From Ylistrum balloti (taxonomy: Eukaryota): DNA of 64,000 nucleotides. The stretch lies in the NCBI RefSeq assembly GCF_031769215.1, contig NW_026782376.1, positions 1,302,001-1,366,000 of the forward strand, in the 5' to 3' direction. The translations under genes were made by a program, and so were the position numbers. Every line of letters starts with the position of its first letter. The first letter of the stretch is position 1. The notes under the pieces were generated by a model. The model saw only the letters and a list, made by a program, of their open reading frames with translations, was not told the origin of the DNA and ran no database searches. Positions 172 through 54,166 of the stretch are shown piece after piece.

Positions 172-19911
<19,740 letters not shown>

Positions 19912-29517: not shown

Positions 29518-32500
29518 ATGTCTTCACAGTCCAGGTTCTTATGGATATTTGTACATGTTTCTTTAAATGTTAACTCTTAACAGAACAATATATGGGGATT
29601 AATACCTCTACTCTCTTCATTCTCCCACACCATTATGTTCACATATTCTACCGCATTGACAAATCAATAACGTGTCAGATCTGAAATTTGGCGGAACTTC
29701 TTGGAGTTAGGGTTGTTTTTATTTACACATCTGTTTTTTTTTTTTATTATTATTCTAGTAATTCTTCCATGAGCAATCCGTGTCATTTTGAGGTAGGTTT
29801 TCCTTGTAGTAGGTTGTGACTCCCCATTGAATACCATTCGGAATTTCCGCATGCTATCCAGGGTTTATACAATCGTGTACGGCACAACATGACGATCTAA
29901 GTTATCTGAGGAAATTTGAAATGTGATAACGCACAGAGGACTTAAATCGTCATCCTCTCCCCTTTTGTTTAGAACACTTTTCTTAATACAAAGCAAACTT
30001 TCTTCGGATATTTGCGATATGCTCGACATTGAACAGTCTTAGTACTGGGTTTGAGGCTATAATATCCATTTCTTTTTAGCAAAACGTTGGCAGGGAAGAC
30101 TCTATTCATAACAGGAGCCAGTCGTGGAATTGGGAAAGCTATAGCATTGAAGGCAGCGAGAGATGGAGCTAACGTTGTCATAGCAGCAAAGACAACAGAA
30201 CCACACCCCAAGTTACCAGGCACCATTTACACAGCAGCCAAGGAAGGTATCCCGGATTTTCATTAAACAGAAGTAATGTGATGTTTTCGTTTGACAACAT
30301 GTATCAGGATTTTGATTATGAATTATGATTTTGGCATAATAACGTTTTTTGCGCCGTTTACGGAAAGTCGGAATCTTCCGTCATTATTTTCGTTTCGTTA
30401 TTAAGGTTACCTGGACAGTGTAGGTCATGATGACCTATTGCGATCATTCTTCGTCTGTCGAAATGCATTAACTTTTTCTTGAGTACACGATAACTTGAGT
30501 AAATATTTGAAAATGGAACCGACTGGATATTTACAGTTATGGTTCTTTGCAGTTTATTTCCATTGGACCAACTGAACACGATAACTTCAGTAAATATGAA
30601 CAGTTTTTAATGAAGCTTGTTAAATAGCCTTTTATGAATAAGACCTCTGATACGTGCTTACAGAGTTATGGCTTTTTAACGATGGAAGTTTTTGGGGATC
30701 ATTCAGATAACCGTTTAGACCGATGGACCTCTTGCTATTAATGTCAAGGTTGAAACGCTTTACGTTGCGTCACATTACAGGATGTAAAAGTAGGTCACTG
30801 TCGCCCATTTTTCATGAATTTGTTTTTCATTACATATACATGTAGTACCCTAGCCTTTTCGTTTCATTATATATGCAACAGTGGAGGAAGCTGGAGGGGC
30901 GTGTCTAGCGTGTCAGGTGGACATCCGATATGAAGACCAAGTTAAGTCAGCCGCGGAGAAAGCAGTAGCAAAATTTGGAGGGATCGATATCCTGGTTAAT
31001 AATGCTAGCGCTATCAGCATGACCGGAACACTTGAAACCGAGATGAAGAAATTTGACTTGATGACGGAAGTAAATGGACGGGGCACGTTTCTATGGTAAC
31101 TACTAAAAAATATGATACCGTCCATACTAAATTACCTGTTTACATGACCAATTAAGTGGAATTTTACATAGAATATTCGTTCCGGGCGGTGTATGGAGGC
31201 TGGTACATGTCCGCTGATAAATAGCATCTTTTTCTCTCCATATCAATATCAACTTGCTTAAAGTCAGTATGACAATGAAAGATGAACGCACCAAGTGATA
31301 CTAACGCACAGGGCGTCACTGATCTGTGGCACTAAGACAATGAAAGATGAACGCACCAGGTGATACTAACGCACTGGGCTTCACTCATTATCAATCAATC
31401 AATCAATATATTTTATTTGAGTGTCACATATCACAGTACATAGTAATAAAAACAATATTGAACAGTTATTAATAAAAGTGATACCCAGCCGATATCGGCT
31501 TATGAGACACTATATAGTTAAGCATTAAAGTTATGGTTAAAACAATAAAAGTTACGATTATAATGTCCTGTATTGATAATTACATGTAGACCTAGTCAAA
31601 ATATACTGATATTTCCTACACAAGTGAGCGCCGGTACTTAAGCATTAAAAAGACTGTTTTGGCTAATAAAAACTGAATATCCGGCATCTCCATTAACCTT
31701 ACAAATTTTTCACACGAAGTTAATAAAAGAAAGTTTGGTAAAATGGCTGTAGCTTCATTAAAAACATCACTTCTAATTTCATTAAAAACTGGACAGTCAC
31801 ATAGAAGATGTATCTCGTCTTCGACTTGACCACTCTCACAATGTTTACACAGGCGGTCATCTAGAGGAATGTTTGTATATCGACCTGTCTCTATGGAAAG
31901 GGGGAGACAACCCAAACGAAGACGCGACAATGCACGACGATAATTTCTTGGAATAATAGACGTCACGTAACTATCGGATATCATATCTTTCTTAAAACGT
32001 CGATGCGTTCGCAGTTTGTTGCCATTTATTCCTTTATCTGTCCAGAGTTTTGTGAACCACACAGCTTCATCGTGGATACGAAGGCTTCGCCCGATGTTAC
32101 ACATTTTCCACCTATTACTATTAGCACTGTTTATGATATCTCTAATGTTAAGTTTTGATGCTAGGCGTTTAACTCTAGCTTCCCACGAGTTTCCTCTTCT
32201 TATAGACCATTTATGAATTTTGTGAAGAAGACGATATGCGTCCACATTTTGTAAACGAATGTATTGACGAAAAACCCCCATCCTTTGTTTTGTTACTAAT
32301 GAAGTCCATCCCATATCTCCTAACGAACCCAAGTTTGACGCACGTTTACCGACACATAAGAAGAGTTTCATGGCACGCGTTTGAATATTGTTCAATTTCC
32401 GATGCTCCGTATGTCCCCATACTGCAGCTCCATACAATAAGATAGGTTGTACAAGTGATTCAAAAAGTTTTGTAAATACCTTATATTCCATACCTCCTAC

Positions 32501-34981
32501 ACTCAGGAATTTTGTAGTGAGGGCACCTAAGGCTCTACTTGCTGACTTGGATAATTCCTGGATTGCTACTTTGAATGTGAGATGTTCGTCGAACCAGAGA
32601 CCTAGATATTTATATCTATCTGAGATAGTAACTGTGGTACCGTCGAGTGTAAAATTACATGTAGTGCGAGGTTGGTTAATATGACGGAAATGGACCACGT
32701 TAGATTTTCCATAATTAACTTTTAAATCCCACTTTGCACACCAATCACCGACGTGGTTAATTACACGTTGTAAATTCTCAGCAGACGGAGCTAACAACAC
32801 AATATCATCAGCGTAAAATAACGACGCAATATTTGTATTATCCACATCAATTCCAAGATTCAGCTGTCGAAGCTCCTTGATCAAATCGTTAATGAATATA
32901 GAGAATAGTGGCACTAAGACAATGAAAGATGAACGCACCAGGTGATACTAACGCACTGGGCGTCACTGATCTGTGGCACTAAGACAATGAAAGATGAACG
33001 CACCAGGTGATACTAACGCACTGGGCGTCACTGATCTGTGGCACTAAGACAATGAAAGATGAACGCACCAGGTGATACTAACGCACTGGGCGTCACTGAT
33101 CTGTGGCACTAAGACAATGAAAGATGAACGCACCAGGTGATACTAACGCACTGGGTATCACTGATCAGTGGAACTAAATACAAACGGGAACATCATCGTT
33201 CGGATAGAATAATAGTGATCGGAGTTTATAATTACAACTTTCTCATCATAATTTTATTATACTTATTGACCAACCGCACAATAAGTCGATATTTAGAACC
33301 TTATACTGCAAATATGCTTGAAACATTATTCGAAACAGCTTGTTTACTGATTATGAAATTAGAGACCCGAGCATCTCCTTTTCGGACTCATTAAAAGAAA
33401 AAATAAGCCAGGACAGATACAATTTGTTGGTAGATTTGAAGAAACCATTTATATCACACCATTTTATCAATACAAATTGTTTTCGTTTTAGTTCAAAAAT
33501 ATGTCTTCCCTACCTGATGAAAAGTGACAACCCACATATCCTCAATATCAGTCCCCCTCTCAATCTCAGCAGCCACTGGTTCAAAGATCACGTTGGTGAG
33601 TGCGCTTGAGGGCAGGTGTCTTTGATTAAAGGTTATGATAGGCGTTTCCCATACAAATTACAGGTAACATAAATTCATAAAGAAAACTTATTAACATAAA
33701 ACCAACGGGCAAAGTGAAATCAAAACCATGTCAATTTTTTTCTTTCATTCAAACAGTGAATTTACACTTGTTGTATTCAACTATGAATTCCATATTTTAC
33801 CTCGGATCGATAAATGTGCTACTTTTTGCAACTTTTGTATTATTGCTTGACAGCGTATACAATGGCGAAGTACGGGATGTCGATGTGTGTCCTTGGAATG
33901 GCGGAAGAGTTCAGATCCAAGCACGTGGCTGTAAATGCCCTTTGGCCGAGAACTGGTCAGTGTGATGCCTTTTCAAAATTTACATTTCCATTCTATACAA
34001 TATGCAATATTAATTACGAAAGAATGTATGCACATTTTACTTTTTATTATTTTCAAATTTGGAGAAAATCACCTTTATAATCGAAAGTTTTCGGTCTCCG
34101 ATAATATAAGAGACATATGTAAAGCACACATGTATGACATTTATGACAGCATAACTAAAGTCACGGTCTGTGATGTCATATCGATTGTGACGTCATAATT
34201 ATTACATTGAAGTTCTAAGACCAGGCTGAAAACAAACCATACAGTGGCAAATATACTGCCATAACTGCAACATGTTGTAATTGATTTTCAATGTATATTT
34301 TCGTAAACAGCAATATACACAGCTGCTGTCCAGATGATTTGCGCAGACAATAAGGAAATCATTCAAGAATGTCGAAAACCGGAGATAATGGCCGACGCAG
34401 CTCACAATATTCTGACAAAAGACAGTAAATCTTACACAGGGAACTTCGTAATTGACGACCAAATTCTCCGTGATGCTGGGGTGACGGATCTCGACAAATA
34501 TGCCTGTGTACCCGGTAGGTTAATTTGATGGGGGAGAGAGAGAGAGCGCGCGCGCGAGAGAGAGAGGCAGAGATCAAGTGCGTGCGTTGTTTACCACACA
34601 TAACTGTACGAGGTCACTTTTACCATACCGAAAAATGTGTGAATTGCACTTTTTCACTGTCTTAAAATATTACCTCCAGACACAATATGTTCTTGGTAAA
34701 TACACAATAGATAAATAAATATAAAGAAAAATAAATAAATTGATATAAATAAATAGATATTTCGTATTTACTCTTGTTCTCACTAAGAACAAATGCAGAA
34801 AAATAATTAAGCACATTTCTTTACTCTGAAGAATACATGAATATTTGGTTCTCCATCTCTAACTACCATACAATCACAAATATTTGATCTATTTTTCGTC
34901 TTTGATGCAGGGGGGAAACTGTCTCTAGACTTTTTCCTGGAGGGAGACATTCCGGGTCAAGAGCTCATACAACCTGCTTAA
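29518..34981 (+). CDS. HSDL2: HSDL2-like short-chain dehydrogenase paralog, SDR domain only (about 292 aa; no SCP2 domain, no PTS1)
   Basis: Exons 29518-29534 (tentative; MSSQS, phase 2, weak donor), 30080-30246, 30882-31095, 33492-33595, 33854-33955, 34311-34514, 34911-34981, in frame. Motifs TGASRGIG, NNAS, NISPPL, AYTMAKYGMS (YxxxK), NALWPRT; ends LDFFLEGDIPGQELIQPA*. Confidence 0.85.
30401..30735 (+). mobile_element. Internally deleted non-autonomous Helitron-like repeat (same family as 39418-40590)
   Basis: Shares a 5' TGACCTATTGC motif and a 3' ACCGTT(T)AG.CC..TG..CCT motif with 39418-40590. The family assignment is an inference. Confidence 0.45.
31271..31385 (+). repeat. 65-bp tandem array, left part (one partial copy plus one 60-bp copy)
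   Basis: GACAATGAAAGATGAACGCACCA(A/G)GTGATACTAACGCAC unit, the same as at 32908-33177. Confidence 0.92.
31386..32907 (-). mobile_element. Recent 5'-truncated LINE (CR1/L2/Crack-group-like), RT C-terminal half, antisense in intron 3 of the short HSDL2 paralog
   Basis: About 430 uninterrupted codons: LFSIFINDL, FYADDIVLLA, YKYLGLWF, RLRLGCLPLSIETGRY, RLCKHC...EDEIHLLCDCP. The 3' UTR has AATAAA and a (TTGA)4 tail near 31390. Confidence 0.93.
32908..33177 (+). repeat. 65-bp tandem array, right part (4 copies plus a partial)
   Basis: Units start at 32908, 32973, 33038, 33103 and 33168; the first three are identical. Confidence 0.95.
34530..34572 (+). repeat. Compound microsatellite (GA)n(GC)5(GA)n
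   Basis: GGGGGAGAGAGAGAGAGCGCGCGCGCGAGAGAGAGAGG. Confidence 0.85.
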
Positions 34982-36033
34982 GAGATCCGACTTTCTTGGT
35001 GGAAAAATAAAGTGTTTTGTTCTGGACAACTGATTGATTTTTTTTTAGTTTTTACTGTTCAAAGTTGCATCCCTACTAGTGGTTCAGAATTTACTACTTT
35101 GAGGCAAGTTTGGGGTCCTTGCAAAGCTACAGACAGCACGGAGGTATCTATCTTACTGATGACGGGCAATCTTTGGCGATTTAGTTTTAGAGTGGTGGAT
35201 GCACCTGGACTTATGACAGAAAAACGTTTCCAAAAATCAGTCTATGAGAAGTGATTTTTTCGCTCCTCTACGGGGTCAGGAAAATTATCGAAAATAACAC
35301 ATGTAACTATACTTGAAGTATAACAGCTACTTTGTTGTGCAACATTCATATAAGATAATTTCTTACAATACAATATTAAACATGTGACTTTTTTGTACTG
35401 CTGTAAAAAATCATTAATAATAGAATACAAGAGAAATTATTGCATTGACCGAAAACAGCATTAAACGTCTCAGATCATCCTATGAAATTTCACTCGTGCA
35501 AGGTTAAAAAAATCACGTTCCACGATTCTGAACAACGCAGATATCTTTATTTTACGATGATTTTTATGAAACCACACCGCAAACTAGCTTTTTCTACGAA
35601 ATACGATTTAGTTTATCATTATTAAACCTAATCAATTTTATTGAAAATTACGTATCCTCTATCTCCAGTCTCGCATGAAAATTCGCACCATCGTTAATGA
35701 AAGCCCGGTGATACTTTTCTGGTTTGTATTGATGTGAAATAGTATTCAAAGTTTAATCCAAAGTTTAAATAAATAACCATGTTAAATTTACAATTCCTTG
35801 ATTAAAAAAAATAGATGAAGTAAAACAAAAAATGTTTGACTTTCTTTTTCTAACTCGTGGATTTTTCAAACGATTCAATCAAATCTGCATGAAGCTAGGC
35901 GGTTCTGATCAACCTGACTTCATTAATTGTTTAATATACATCTTAACCAAAAGGACTCTCTGGTGAAAATTAGTTTTTTGGCGACCAATACAGATACCAT
36001 ATTTTCGTGTATTTTTTTCTAAATCAGTATTGA

Positions 36034-45477: not shown

Positions 45478-48400
45478 TTATAATTTTGGTGACATTTTAT
45501 TCATAAGTTTTTCAAGCTTCATGGCCATAGCCATATCTCCTTTGATTTTAAGTTTTCCCGACATAAAGGCTGCAACAGGTTTGAGCTCGCCTGCAAACAT
45601 CTTCTGGAAATCAGCACTGTCCATGCTCATTGTACAGTCAGCTCCCATTGGGGGCTCACCTGGTCCCAGGCTTCCAGCACCAGATTTCAAGTTGATGAAC
45701 CACGTACTATCATCAGTACCTGCAACAGATTGGCAATGCACCCTAATATTGTACATTACTGATACCTTACACACACCATGGCCAGTTTTGTTATTGGATT
45801 GAGAATTTAAAACCTTGTGACTACATACTGATCCCCTATTACAGAATTCTGTAAAATCACATATTATCGTTGGTCTCAATTTTCATGATTATTAAAAAAA
45901 ACTGAAGCTAATTTCAAAAGTTTGTGAACACACCAATTCAACAACAGTACCCACAAAATCAATGAAAATCAAACCCTGAGAAAATTGATGGTTTTACAGT
46001 ATACATTTCATTTTAATTTTTAATCATTAGGCACTGTCAAAAGCAGATTTCCATAGACAATGCAGTGAAAATCTCAAACTGCATTAGAATTGGTATAAAA
46101 CAAAGATACAAAATGATATTTTCAATACTGACAAACGTATTTAGAGTTGACATCTATATTTCATCATGTAACTGGCCTGTACAGGTTATACATTGACCAA
46201 ATCATTCACTTGGAGGTAAATACATACCTGACAGATTGAATTGGAAAACACCTCCTACACTTCCCACTAGATCCTCACTAAGCATAGACTGGATGGTTTC
46301 AAATGTCTTGGCTGGTCCACTGGTCCCAGCGGTTCCACTAAAAGCAGGTGTGGCACCTCCTTCACTCATTTGCTCCCTCAGTGTGTTGGCATCGACATCC
46401 AAGAAAAAGTCTGGGAGAAGTTTGCTGCCTGAAATAGTTAAAGTTAAGGTATGATTAGATGAGTCAGTTTTATACTCATGATAGATACTTCACTGAAACC
46501 TAAACAAACTATAAGGTAAGAATATTTGAATATCATTTACGTGTTTCTTTGTGGTAATAACCCCATGCCTGATAATAAGCATGTCTATGTTTTACTATTC
46601 AATAGAATTATAAAGGTATGTTACTCAATCATGTGATAGTGTGTCAGGCTTGGTATGGTTACCCTCTTGGTTGTTGCAGAATAACAGAATACAGTAATAG
46701 AATCCTTCACCTCTGTGTAGTGTAGACAGAGTTTTCTCAACCTGATATATATAAAGTTAAGTATGAAGCTATGCTAAACTTTGTAAATATTATCCGAGGG
46801 TTGAGATAACATTGTCCATATCATACAGAAATGATTGACTATTTTTCTCTCACTCTTTTCCATCAAAAAATGTCTTTGGGAATTGTACACACCCTGCTAT
46901 CATCAATTGCCCATAAAATGTGTGTTGAAATTGATGACGGTATCCATATCTGACATGGTTACCCTAACAAAATGATGTTTATCCCACTGTAAGTGGTGAT
47001 GTCAAAAGGCTTTTGTAAGCTGTCTTTTTCTCGGTTCCTAATCTTTCCCTGTAAACACAGGACAGCACCTGCAAAGTGTAGATGGATAAATGTGGTTTTA
47101 CAATATTAACTCACAAGACAATAAAATCTTTCTTTTTACCTTTTACCCAGCTATACTCCTCCATATCACTAACTCCAGCAGCTGCGAGTACTTCATCATC
47201 GATAGCAAAGTTTCCAGTGTAGGACTTGCTATCCTTAATCAGCATCACATAGGCAGCATCTGACATGATCTCAGGCTTACGACACTGCTTGGCTACCTCA
47301 TCTCCTCCACCTAACATCTCCATGGCAGCAGTGTAGATGGCTGGAAAAGAGTAACATTTCAAAGTAATCAATTGTTAGCAGTGTAAGTTATTCAAGGTTG
47401 ATAGAATTTTTAGCCCCCTTTACCATGAGATGGGGGATCTCAACCTGAGGGGGAGATTACTAAGTTGTTAAACCCGAGGTTTACCTAATGTTTGACAGCT
47501 GAATAATCTTCCCCGAGGGTATAGATCCCCATATCTCACCCTAAACAGGATGAATGATTATTTTTTTCTTACCCTATATTTCTTGCCTGAATGCAAGATA
47601 AGTGTTTTGTGTGTAAACAAAAACTCAAGGATGACATATGAATAGTGATGAGACATCTCACACATTGTGATTTAATCCTACACAAAATGTGATTCTAGTG
47701 TACATGCCAATAAAACGTTAGATATATTTTTGGTAAGCTGTAGATTGAGTTTCAATGTTGATGACAGCACAGGATTTCCAGATTTGAGGTAACACAGGAT
47801 TTCAGTAGCAGATGAATTGATCTGTGTACGTGACCTAATAAAAGTAGTTTAGGGACGTCACTGAAATTGTTTACAGAACGTGCAAAGAGCATGTGTACAA
47901 AACAAGGAAATCTCACACTGGGAAAAAATCTAGATTTACCTTACCAGGGTAAGAGAAAAAAAATAACACAGTATGGGGCTGATGAGAGTTAGTCATCACT
48001 GACCATATCTGATAGCACTTTTGATTAATTTCTGTCATTTTACCAATTCTTGAATTTATTACATATTTTTTGTTTTTATATTCTACATACATGTAATCTA
48101 CTCTATAAATAAATATGTGTAAATAGTAAGATTAAACTACACATTATTTACATGTTTGTTATTTCTTATATGTTTTGAGAATTGCATAAAAACTTCTTAC
48201 AAGCAAATTCAGTGAAAACTGTATTTTTGCAACATAAATATAAATTAAGAACTGTAAATTTTCACATTTCTCTTACAGTGGACAGCTTCAAATTTTAGAT
48301 TTCAAAACACTTTACAAGCAGTACAATTGCCACTCAATGCTAATTTTCATTGACAATTTTTGTAAATTCACCTAGAACAGTACATTTTTAGCCCTCACTA

Positions 48401-51400
48401 GATTCTACAGAGACCCTGGTAACCACAACCACATAAATAGGCAGTAGTTGAAATGTTCTTGTACTAACTAGAATTATTACACAACTTGAGATAATAGCAG
48501 TCATGCACTCAAAATTTTCACAAGCAAGTTACTCCAACTATCCATGGTTTTCCATAATGTACATGTATTTCTGGCATTAGAAAATATGGTTTGATTACTA
48601 CTCTTTCAATTTCCATCAGATATATGTAATCTGCCATCATTATTACTTGAAAATCAGATGAAGTACAATTTAAAATACTCTAAAAACTAATATGTTAATG
48701 GAAATCTTATTTTGGCACTTTTTGTGGTGAAAGTATTGTCCTAAAATAAGATAGCACTAATTGCTGCTCAGACAGTAATTATTATAAATTTGTAATTGCG
48801 CTTATGTAACAGAAAGGGATTATGCACTAAATTTCAATTGCACAAAGTTATGCAAAACAGAAACTCATTTATTCTCCAAAAACAGTACCTAATTAAGATT
48901 ATCCTGCAAATCACATGTGATGCTTCTCCACCACAGATCTAATATACTTACCTGTCCTTGGCCAGAGAGCATTAACAGCAACTCCATCAGGTTTGAACTC
49001 CTCAGCCATTCCCAAGACACACATTGACATTCCATACTTAGCCATGGTATATGCTGAAAAATATTATCATCATAGTGTAAATATATCAAATTGAACCAAG
49101 AGGTGAATTCTGAAAGTCATTTTTAGCGAATTTTGTAAACACTGGAGATCCACTGGGCCTTGATTGCACACTTATATTTGTTTGGCTAATTGTTTCATCC
49201 TTACGAAAGGAAAAGGAATTCTAAGCGTTTCTTTTTGTTTCCAATTGAGGTCCATCCATCTGCTCCTAAACCATGTCTATAAAAGAATCCTTCATCCAGA
49301 TATACTTCAGACCAAATGGATTTTAAAGAATTGACTCTATTTCCCCTATTGGACTTAGCACCTCCCATCCTAGGGGGTCCTCCAAGACCCACTATGTATA
49401 CAAAAAAGTATTTTCCATCAAAGGGTACTTCAGACCAAATTGGGACAGAATTCTGATATTCCTACAGAGAAAAGAGGATTTCCCTTATAAGGTTCTGACC
49501 TCATGCCCCAGGTGGCAGAGACAACTGATTATACAAAAGTGAGTCTCCGTCACCTAAGAATGCTTCAGACCCAACTAACAGAGAAAGTCCAGACATTCAA
49601 TGTAAAATTTAAGAATAATGACAGGACTGAGAAGGGTTAATTTTAAGATTATCTTAAGTAACAATGACCTTGTTATTGAGGCTGTAATATTCAAGCTCAA
49701 ATGTATTCTTGGAAATAAGCCCCTGTATAAGATTTAGAATAAGAGTTTGTAGAAGGAAATGATTCAGGAAATCTATTTTTAGTAATAATGAACTTGACCT
49801 TAAGCTAGATGTCTGATATGAGAAACTGTTTGAGCTATTTTTGGTAGTGAACCAGCAATGTATGATGTTTTATGGAAGCTGGATAATATTTGTAAAAGAC
49901 AACAAAAGTTTGATTGATGGATGATGCCTCAGGGTAAATAAATGATGTCTTGTTTTTAAATCAAATGACCTGGGAATAAGTTTACTGTTGATGTAAAGAA
50001 ATCCTAATCTCCTAATCTAAGTAATAAATCTGAAGTTTTGGCACTTGACACTCACCTACATGTCCCTTGAACCAATCCTTGTTCATGTTAAGTGGAGGGC
50101 TGATGTTCAAAATGTGAGGATTAGAACTCTTCAGGAGGTAAGGTAAGCATACATGAGAACTGAAATCAAAGAGAAAGTACCCAGGACTCATTTCATAAGT
50201 TTTGGAAAATGGACTAAAAGGGAAATGGAATCTCAGATTATTGAATCTTGATTTTGTTTTTTCATTGTTTCTGTGCTTTATTTTTCACACCATTTTGAGT
50301 CTTGAATTAAGTTTACAGGATGGAAACCATCAAGTTCATATACAATCTGCTATCATAATATATACATCAAGAGAAGTGATAAAAGACATATTTCCAATAT
50401 GAATATGTGCTTTACGTCACTAACAATATCAGAGACAATGTGCCCTGGTTAATATTAAATAAATAACATCCACTACATTTACAGACCATAGTTCACATCA
50501 CATATAACACTCACCAGAGGTAAGTACCCCTGCCATTGATGTTCATCATTAGGTCATATTTCTTCATGCCTGTTGACAGCGTGCCTGTGAGGGAGATGGC
50601 GCTGGCATTATTGACAAGGATGTCAATCCCTCCAAACTTGGCTACAGCCTCCTCTACTGCTTTCTGCACCTGTTCTTCATTTCTGATGTCTACCACACAG
50701 GGCAGACATTTCCCTCCAGCATCTTCAACTGTAATATGAAAATGATTTATCAATATCAGAGGCCCAGAACATCAACTTACCTGCAGAGTCTGGGGGTAAA
50801 GTCAGGATTTTATTTATCAGCAGCAGTACTTTTGGATTACAAACAAGTCACAATTTAATGGTTATTGATTATTGTACATCTGTATACTATTGTTTTACAT
50901 ATTTAATGTAACTACATTTATTTTGTACTTTCCTGCTAATATTGCATAATTAATGGAGGGAGTGGGGATGATGGGAGAGAGAAAAAAACGAAAAAAAAAT
51001 CAAATTAATTCCCAATATATAAGATAATCTGACATTGAAAATGTGTGTTTAAACTGTTTCATTTCAGACAATGGTGATATTTGGTTTAAACATGGTTTAT
51101 CCTGAAACATATGTAAGTCAATGAACAATATATATTAGAGGAAAATTGGGACATTTATTTACAGAAATATGATAAAAATTTGGGAATTTTACAGTAAACC
51201 TCTGCTCAGTTCAAATAACAGGTTGTTTGAACATGTAATTTCTTCAACAAAAACAATAATTTTCTGTCTAGTGACAGTTTGAACCCTTTCTAGTTTTGTG
51301 TCATTTACCATTTGAATTGTTCAAACATATTGTCAGACCACATGTATTGGTAAAGATATTAGCAATAATTACTTCATGTTGTCATTACTCACATCAATGT

Positions 51401-54166
51401 TAAAATATGGGTAGTGGGATGTAAATATTCATTGTAAGCAATCGATAGTGCCCAATTATACACATACAAGTCACTTAATTAGCATTGATTCAGCGTGATT
51501 TCTTTCACATCTTGCCATGCCACTGTGCTTGTAACAGCTGACATAACTTGAGGCCTGTAATACCAGTGCTTGCTTCATCAGTGTAAATGGACTACAGAAT
51601 ATTGGCATGTATATTGTCAAAGAGCACTTAACATAGTAATTATCCCTATTTATTATGTCAAATAACTGTAGGAGTCATAGTGCATTTTAACAAACATGAA
51701 TCCATTGTCATAAATCTCAATCCACACTTCATATAATGATATGAGAATGCTTTTTTCGACCTACATTTAAAATGGGTTTCTTTGTCGCAATATCCATTGT
51801 GATGAAGAACAAAATAATGATTTTATTAACAGTCAACTAATATCTACAGCAAATGTTTCAAAAGATAATCTCATTGTAATCAACATCTTTTTTCCAGAAA
51901 ATACCATAATAGATTTCCTGCCTAGTTTGAAAGGTTCTGACTATCTATCTGCGACTTTGTTCTTGTCTTGGTTGCAGCTCATCCATTACAAGAGGAAAAA
52001 AAATTGTGCATAGATAGTCAGAACCCTTCACACTATTTCCTGCCTTGCTAAGATGCTTTTTTTAATAATTTGTAATGATTATTGGGCACTGTCAACTCTG
52101 ATAATTTGAACTTCAGTTTATTTTCACGAGAAGAATTTCATACAATTGAAAGAGTTAAACAATATTTATTTTATTTTTGTTCAAAATGACTGCAGGTTTA
52201 CTGTAATTCCTTTAGATAATGTAAAACAAGTTTTTATTAAACAGCTGTCATCTATTTATTTAAGTCACATACAAATATGATCTTAAGATGCTAGGTGAAA
52301 AGTAACAAATTTTTTTGTTATATAGCACACCTTCCTTGGCCGCTGTGTAAATGGTGCCTGGTAACTTGGGGTGTGGTTCTGTTGTCTTTGCTGCTATGAC
52401 AACGTTAGCTCCATCTCTCGCTGCCTTCAATGCTATAGCTTTCCCAATTCCACGACTGGCTCCTGTTATGAATAGAGTCTTTCCTGCTAAAAGCCTGAAA
52501 CAAAGACAAATTCTATTTACATTGAAATATCAAATAGCTTTTTAATGTGATCGTTTTAGGTGAAAGAATGGGATCATTGTCTCTATGGTATAAAAACTGT
52601 ACCTCTTCAATATTTCATAAATATGAAGTGAATAAATTTAACCATTATCAAAATGTTGAGTAACTGATATTTACAGCATTCATCAGTAAACCTTATACTG
52701 AGCATTTATGTATTCAACATATACATGCATAATGTATCTTACATTAATTTTACCTGAAAAGTGTTTATTATATGCCTTTATATTGTATTAGTAACTGATA
52801 AATATATATACAGGATATTTATATGACATGACATGTTGTGGTGCAGTATACTAGCCCTGAAGGCTCAATAAATGTTCATTAACTTTGTCCGGAGTTGATC
52901 TTCCATGCTCAGTAATTAAGTGATGACACATTTTTGATTAATTTTAATGGGCTATTACACAGTTAATTTTTGCTCATATTTGGTACAAAATATTTAAATA
53001 ACATTAATACATTTATTACAATATTTCTCCAAACTTATCATACTATATATATCTTTCGAAGACCGTTGCATTTCTAATAAACTGTATTTAATTTTTTTTT
53101 TTTTTTTCAAATTTGAGATAAAGAGGAGGAGAGACAATCCATTTAAGTTATTCTTTAAACAATAAAGGATCAAGAAGGCCATATCATCATCCATCATTCT
53201 GGTAAAGTGAAGACAGTCAGTGGCACAGCAATAAGGTATGCTTGTACACTCAAAACAATGATTATTGTTAAAAAAAAATATTACTGCATTTTTTCAATTT
53301 TTATTGAATAATATGTGTTGGTGTAAATAGAAAAGGTATCTCTGATTAGCTAATACCTGTCAGGTTCAGGGGGGCTTCTCCCCTGGGCCCTCTCTTGAAA
53401 GCATACACCCCTAAAAAACGTTTGCTATGCCACTATATCTGTATCTATCATATATATTTATAAACCATATACTAGATTTCATTTCTTTTAATTTTGCTTG
53501 ATTGGAAAGTTTGGTAACTAAAACCAGATAGATATATCTCTGCTAGACAATAAGGAAAATTAACAAACCAAATTTTTTGGCCCTACAATGAACAGCGCAG
53601 TTTTGCATGGATTGTTGAGTTCCATGTGGTAACATCAAAATAAAAAACTCAGAAATAAAGTTACAAACAGGTAATGGCATTAATTATGATAGGAAGTAAT
53701 ATGGTTACAAAATTGCCCTGCTTCCAAGGTTTGAACAAGCAAAACAGAAAGCCCCACTAGGCAAGGCAACCTTTACTCTCAACTTCCATGTGCTTAACAA
53801 TAAGAATGTATAATAACTTCTTAAAATAAGTGATTATTTCAATATATTTTTGTGTAAATCAGGGGACTAAGGTATATTCTTATTGGCAGAACATCAGACT
53901 CCTCTGGTTAACAAGACTTATAAACTGTTGAATGTTTAGTGCAAGGAAATAATGACAACTTCAATCAGAGACGTATAAAACATGTGTAAGATATAAATTC
54001 ATAGTGACTAGACACATACTATTTCATTTTTTATCTAAGCTTATCACAATACCACTTGCACAAAGTAGCCTACAAATAAATTGCAATAGATATGATTCAA
54101 GTTGACGAATATTATGTAACACAGAACACTGTTTCACTACCGTCACCTGTCATTGAAATCCTGCAT
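45478..54166 (-). CDS. HSDL2: Hydroxysteroid dehydrogenase-like protein 2, full length (SDR, linker, one SCP2 domain, PTS1-like PKL), about 415 aa
   Basis: Exons (minus) 54166-54147, 52494-52331, 50728-50515, 50159-50056, 49053-48952, 47340-47140, 46428-46228, 45719-45478; 1248 nt in frame. Motifs TGASRGIG, NNAS, AYTMAKY; SCP2 segment ...AFMSGKLKIKGDMAMAMKLEKLM; ends SPKL*. Confidence 0.93.
45847..46001. mobile_element. Tc1/mariner-type MITE copy (TACTGTAAAA.CA TIR family)
   Basis: TTCTGTAAAATCA ... TGGTTTTACAGTA ends, the same family as 63600-63805. Confidence 0.55.
47427..47537. repeat. Imperfect inverted repeat of about 33 bp (MITE-like hairpin); related sequence near 46705-46850
   Basis: GAGATGGGGGATCTCAACCTGAGGGGGAGATTA versus the reverse complement of TAATCTTCCCCGAGGGTATAGATCCCCATATCTC. 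Confidence 0.55.
49270..49600 (+). repeat. Degenerate satellite-like repeat, period about 125-135 bp
   Basis: T(A/G)CTTCAGACC(A/C)AA recurs at about 49303, 49427 and 49561. Confidence 0.45.
53218..53435. mobile_element. Possible hAT-like MITE
   Basis: Inverted termini CAGTGGCACAGC / GCTATGCCACTA. No target-site duplication found. Confidence 0.35.

Follow-up and report, generated by a model that had tools for sequence, protein, structure and literature searches.

In the genome of Ylistrum balloti, two HSDL2-type genes that diverged long ago share a single exon that is nearly identical at the DNA level, very probably through a recent, short-tract and non-reciprocal interlocus (ectopic) gene conversion between convergent paralogs, with transfer likely from copy B to copy A. 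The genes lie in a window of 64,000 nt (assembly GCF_031769215.1, contig NW_026782376.1, positions 1,302,001 to 1,366,000, forward strand), to which all coordinates below refer. The exon-2 sequence occurs in only two copies in the whole 648-Mb assembly, both on this one contig, and a retrocopy is absent from that assembly. Copies A (+) and B (−) point towards each other on one chromosome, with exons of GWT1/PIGW between them (38.0–41.1 kb) and an SCPx-type thiolase gene beyond copy B. Recent gene conversion of this Rossmann exon had been proposed in a sequence-only reading of the same DNA, and that proposal is now backed by per-exon dS, a permutation test, a comparison of silent sites across species and the absence of an RNA element.

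Gene models were built from a translated self-comparison of the window together with splice-site reading. The exons of the two copies are colinear, with canonical AG/GT borders throughout, matching phases and open frames; exon 1 was located for neither copy, and both models begin at exon 2. Exon 2 of copy A (30080–30246, +), flanked by an AG acceptor and a GT donor, encodes the Rossmann segment with the TGxxxGIG NAD(P)-binding motif and covers positions 1–39 of Pfam adh_short. It is followed on the same strand by exon 3 (30882–31095), exon 4 (33492–33595), exon 5 (33854–33955), exon 6 (34311–34514) and the last exon, exon 7 (34911–34981). The copy B counterparts are all encoded on the minus strand: exon 2 (52331–52494), exon 3 (50515–50728), exon 4 (50056–50159), exon 5 (48952–49053), exon 6 (47140–47340), exon 7 (46228–46428; linker and start of the SCP2 domain) and the last exon, exon 8 (45478–45719), which encodes the SCP2 domain and terminates in SPKL before the stop codon. 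Copy A exons 2, 3 and 5 match adh_short (PF00106) in Pfam, and a search with copy A exon 3 returned 3KVO as the best solved-structure match (E = 1.6e-22), the structure of human HSDL2 (hydroxysteroid dehydrogenase-like 2). The Pfam and PDB scans of the SDR exons are those of copy A, to which the copy B exons are 57–100% identical in protein sequence; the SCP2 domain of copy B matches PF02036 with 76.5 bits.

The first reading described both genes as HSDL2 paralogs, which suits copy B fully and copy A only in part. Like HSDL2, copy B combines an SDR domain, a linker, a C-terminal SCP2 domain and a PTS1-like end (PKL). Copy A, in contrast, terminates behind the SDR domain with LIQPA and a TAA codon; it lacks both the SCP2 domain and a PTS1-like end, and its exon 6 contains an insertion. 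There is no SCP2 match on the plus strand between the end of its last exon (34981) and GWT1, and an AATAAA signal lies at 35006, 25 nt downstream of the stop. The same LIQPA ending and stop are found in L005, the only A-type ortholog contig, which comes from a Logan assembly of another species (1.4 kb, without exon 2; the gene lies at 112–1330). The exon 6 insertion (ICADNKEI) is specific to the A type and is present in L005 as well. In a protein tree of exons 5 and 6, copy A and L005 form a pair (97/97), with copy B and three B-type orthologs placed apart, and dN between copy A and L005 is 0.05–0.11 with saturated dS.

Because copy A groups, outside exon 2, with the A-type gene of another species, the duplication that separated A from B is old. 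The low dN at saturated dS, the shared ending and stop, and the tree pairing together identify copy A as a selectively maintained old paralog and not a pseudogene. Since it is devoid of SCP2, a property not mentioned in the earlier reading, copy A is better called HSDL2-like than a full HSDL2, and with no PTS1-like end its predicted product is probably a non-peroxisomal SDR-only enzyme. Two further contigs, L008 and L009, may represent the A-type exon 2 of another bivalve, although nothing connects either contig to other exons of a gene. Several structural features were also seen around these genes and their relatives. A compound (GA)n(GC)n(GA)n microsatellite (34530–34570) lies directly 3′ of the exon 6 donor of copy A, and just upstream of copy A is one arm of an inverted pair (4618–4818 on the plus strand and 29064–28868 on the minus strand; 80% nucleotide identity, 76% over 37 aa, about 24 kb apart). 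Farther upstream is a GA-rich tandem array with a 41-nt unit (12913–15027, about 52 copies, 89% match). In the B-type ortholog L006 of another species (8342–8775), the first ~40 codons of exon 6 occur three times in tandem; coverage of this contig is low (1.95x), and the triplication may be an assembly error.

The near-identity of exon 2 covers 30087–30246 (+) and 52490–52331 (−), which differ at 3 of 160 nt, at 30089 (G/A), 30095 (G/A) and 30236 (A/G). Each of these is a synonymous transition, and for this reason they may be mutations that arose after conversion. Between them lies a stretch of 140 identical nucleotides (30096–30235, corresponding to 52481–52342 in copy B), in agreement with the figures of the sequence-only reading. 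In a blastn comparison of the window with itself, the exon is recovered at 98.1% identity over 162 nt (30087–30248 against 52490–52329), including the shared GT donor; apart from this, the two genes match each other only in exon 3 (71.8%). The introns on either side of exon 2 cannot be aligned between the copies.

The edges of the shared tract differ in kind. At the 3′ end, the difference at 30236 is followed by ten identical exon bases and the GT donor, beyond which alignment fails, in agreement with the earlier observation that identity stops at the splice donor and that the introns are unrelated. The 5′ end of the exon, in contrast to the exact boundary claimed at the 3′ side, is unconverted: the first 7 nt of copy A and the first 4 nt of copy B differ, including a one-codon indel (C-AAA-ACG in copy A against G-CTT in copy B), and two of the three differences (30089 and 30095) sit just inside this edge. 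The unconverted 5′ end is a new observation. In copy A, the minimal conversion tract is therefore the 140 identical nucleotides at 30096–30235 (+), and the maximal tract spans 162 nt (30087–30248, +); the tract is exon-bounded rather than exon-exact.

Evidence for conversion comes from silent sites, for which the per-exon dS comparison suggested by the first reading was carried out. By the Nei–Gojobori method, exon 2 has a pS of 0.073 (3 of 41 synonymous sites) and a dN of 0, whereas exons 3–6 are saturated (pS 0.73–1.16), with a pooled dN of 0.21 and 60–76% nucleotide identity between the copies. Fourfold sites are identical at 28 of 30 positions in exon 2 against 14 of 63 in exons 3–6 (Fisher p = 3e-11), and synonymous codons are identical in 50 of 53 cases against 47 of 134 (Fisher p = 1e-14). 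Exon 3 was said to be diverged as well, and its 71% nucleotide identity and pS of 0.73 bear this out. The control proposed for exon 5 also holds, as the shared residues AYTMAKYGMSMCVLGMAEEF are encoded with differences between the copies at 9 of 16 degenerate codons. When the 205 differences were shuffled over the 768 aligned sites, the longest identical run in 20,000 permutations reached at most 49 nt, compared with the 140 nt observed. Exon 2 thus stands above the background of its own alignment, is homogenised at silent and fourfold sites as well as in protein, and retains locus-specific flanks, as is typical of a converted patch and not of a new duplication.

Conservation of the protein does not account for this likeness. 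At the protein level, no other exon comes close to exon 2 in conservation, with 47–52 of 53 residues and the exon end kept in ORF fragments from many animal assemblies. Even so, third-position agreement with two distant species that have 52 of the 53 residues is limited to 13–16 of 50 sites, and nucleotide identity to about 75%. The B-type orthologs L006 and L007, which have the same exon structure, show an exon 2 pS of 0.74–0.96 relative to the window, and exon 2 of the B-type ortholog L010 is 77–78.5% identical in nucleotides; silent sites are saturated against the window in every relative found. Since silent sites are randomised between species despite the conserved protein, protein constraint alone is insufficient to explain the DNA likeness, as had been argued from the two copies. 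Equal conservation of silent sites across species, which had been named as the observation that would speak against conversion, was looked for in these relatives and was not found.

The two loci also differ sharply in CpG composition. In 2-kb bins, the CpG o/e ratio is 0.88–1.03 across the copy A locus (26–36 kb) and 0.09–0.35 across GWT1 and the copy B locus (38–54 kb). The introns of copy A range from 0.71 to 1.26, and exons 3–6 have a ratio of 0.88 in copy A and 0.16 in copy B, where 29 of 112 and 5 of 110 synonymous CpG opportunities, respectively, are used. The contrast is old, as the orthologs show it too: CpG o/e is 1.07 in the A-type contig L005 and 0.21 in the B-type contig L010. GC3 does not separate the copies (0.50 in A, 0.49 in B). 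Across the region 26000–54000, the switch from 0.9–1.0 (copy A) to 0.09–0.35 (GWT1 and copy B) is sharp and falls at about 36–38 kb. In invertebrates, a low CpG o/e marks gene bodies that are methylated in the germline and belong to broadly expressed genes, and the switch looks like a border at which neighbouring genes pass from an unmethylated into a methylated germline domain.

Exon 2 of copy A departs from this pattern of its own locus. Its CpG o/e is 0.32 and it uses 3 of 42 synonymous CpG opportunities, a rate that sets it apart from the remainder of copy A (Fisher p = 0.013) with no significant difference from the remainder of copy B (p = 0.69), and a binomial likelihood ratio of about 100 favours the B rate. 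Because the exon carries a B-like CpG footprint, copy B is most likely the donor and copy A the acceptor, a polarity that has its basis in these 42 opportunities and that was not part of the earlier reading. The divergence of exon 2 between the copies (pS 0.073, falling to zero within the 140-nt core) amounts to a tenth or less of the saturated divergence between copy A and L005, which makes the conversion much younger than the split between these two species.

The probable course of events begins with a DNA break within one copy's exon 2, which would have been repaired from exon 2 of the other copy, leaving a tract of 140 to about 162 nt. Since the introns share no homology, the exon would be the only homologous block, which may be why the patch is exon-bounded: only a tract that starts and finishes within the exon could resolve. 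The donor in this transfer would be the canonical, CpG-depleted and SCP2-bearing copy B, and the acceptor the old, CpG-rich and SCP2-less copy A. Efficient conversion requires more than 80% identity, and mean tract lengths are on the order of 10–100 bp (PMC3924818). The identity before conversion would have been only about 75%, below the ~80% level (PMC3924818), and an initial event must then have been rare, except where earlier conversions had kept the exon similar.

In its outline, the exon 2 patch agrees with interlocus conversion of linked paralogs as recognised by GENECONV-type tests (PMC3924818), which likewise appears as a non-reciprocal patch of near-identity, silent sites included, shared by neighbouring paralogs of the same chromosome, on the order of 100 bp long and with diverged flanks. 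It differs in its background, which is saturated at silent sites (about 70% nucleotide identity) and thus below the usual efficient range, and in the limitation of the patch to one exon between non-homologous introns. Another parallel is found in newts, where short conversion tracts occur between old sodium-channel paralogs and duplicated exons (PMC8476164). As here, short tracts, below 100 bp in the newts, homogenise one functional segment between otherwise diverged paralogs, with permutation-based evidence. The newt tracts carry adaptive resistance substitutions, whereas the exon 2 protein is identical in the two HSDL2-type copies and no adaptive change is visible; in addition, the newt breakpoints were verified with reads (PMC8476164), while the HSDL2 tract is known from assembled sequence. 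The HSDL2 exon 2 patch is a new instance of a known process and implies no new mechanism.

The single recent event preferred here has to be weighed against a longer history, in which exon 2 alone has undergone concerted evolution, with repeated re-homogenisation since the duplication, while the other exons escaped. Such a history avoids the difficulty of starting conversion at about 75% identity, and the most protein-conserved exon, with 50–52 of 53 residues kept across many animals, is a setting in which conversion can persist. However, a conserved protein still leaves silent sites random between species, again at about 75% nucleotide identity, and the B-like CpG footprint of exon 2 in copy A fits one event equally well; we regard recurrent homogenisation as possible but unlikely. 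A broader version, in which the cofactor-binding exon of the SCP2-less paralog has been overwritten repeatedly across scallops by the canonical HSDL2 exon, with free divergence elsewhere in the gene, so that the two enzymes in effect share one NAD(P)-binding module, appears still more doubtful. If exon 2 were such an island of concerted evolution, the CpG footprint would offer a general readout of conversion direction between methylated and unmethylated invertebrate paralogs.

A recent conversion could in principle have been templated by a cDNA or RNA copy of the copy B transcript during repair of a break in copy A. The restriction of the tract to a single exon is in keeping with this, and the sequence-only reading had pointed to a nearby reverse-transcriptase ORF. 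That ORF does exist in intron 3 of copy A (31616–32938, −), but it matches only positions 129–204 of the RVT_1 profile, that is, the C-terminal part of the domain, and the hint drawn from it falls away with a dead element and a cDNA template that is unnecessary; the ORF is a bystander without a role in the mechanism. It is flanked by a 65-nt tandem repeat (31265–31388, 4.2 copies, 98% match) and a related copy (32908–33177), and the two may have served as terminal repeats of this dead retroelement. An exon-bounded tract is predicted equally by a genomic template, both flanking introns are kept in both copies, divergence in exon 3 begins at its very first base, the first 4–7 nt of exon 2 are unconverted, and the genome lacks a retrocopy. 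Neither locus, nor the 648-Mb assembly as a whole, bears any sign of retro-conversion in the form of a tract across an exon junction, intron loss or a retrocopy, and a cDNA template is accordingly very improbable.

The remaining accounts would do without conversion. In an assembly or polishing artefact, the consensus of one copy's exon 2 would have been replaced with reads that belong to the other copy, but reads from a copy that is about 75% identical would not cross-map, the patch is flanked by unique introns on a single contig, the three differences between the copies persist, and there is neither a haplotig nor a third copy, all of which leaves this explanation with hardly any probability. 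Purifying selection on the nucleotides of exon 2, through an RNA element or a splicing code that holds silent sites in place, is the least credible reading, because silent sites in this exon are random between species, including B-type orthologs of the same structure, a search of the region against Rfam gave nothing at E <= 1, and its RNA fold is no better than that of shuffled sequence (z = 0.06).

Recent interlocus conversion of exon 2 provides a very clean natural example of the process between paralogs that are otherwise saturated at silent sites. Conversion patches of this kind mislead both the dating of paralogs and gene trees, and annotators of the Ylistrum balloti genome should expect to meet them. 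Where paralogs lie in opposite regimes of CpG depletion, as these two HSDL2-type genes do, the patch retains the composition of its donor, and the direction of transfer becomes readable without an outgroup.
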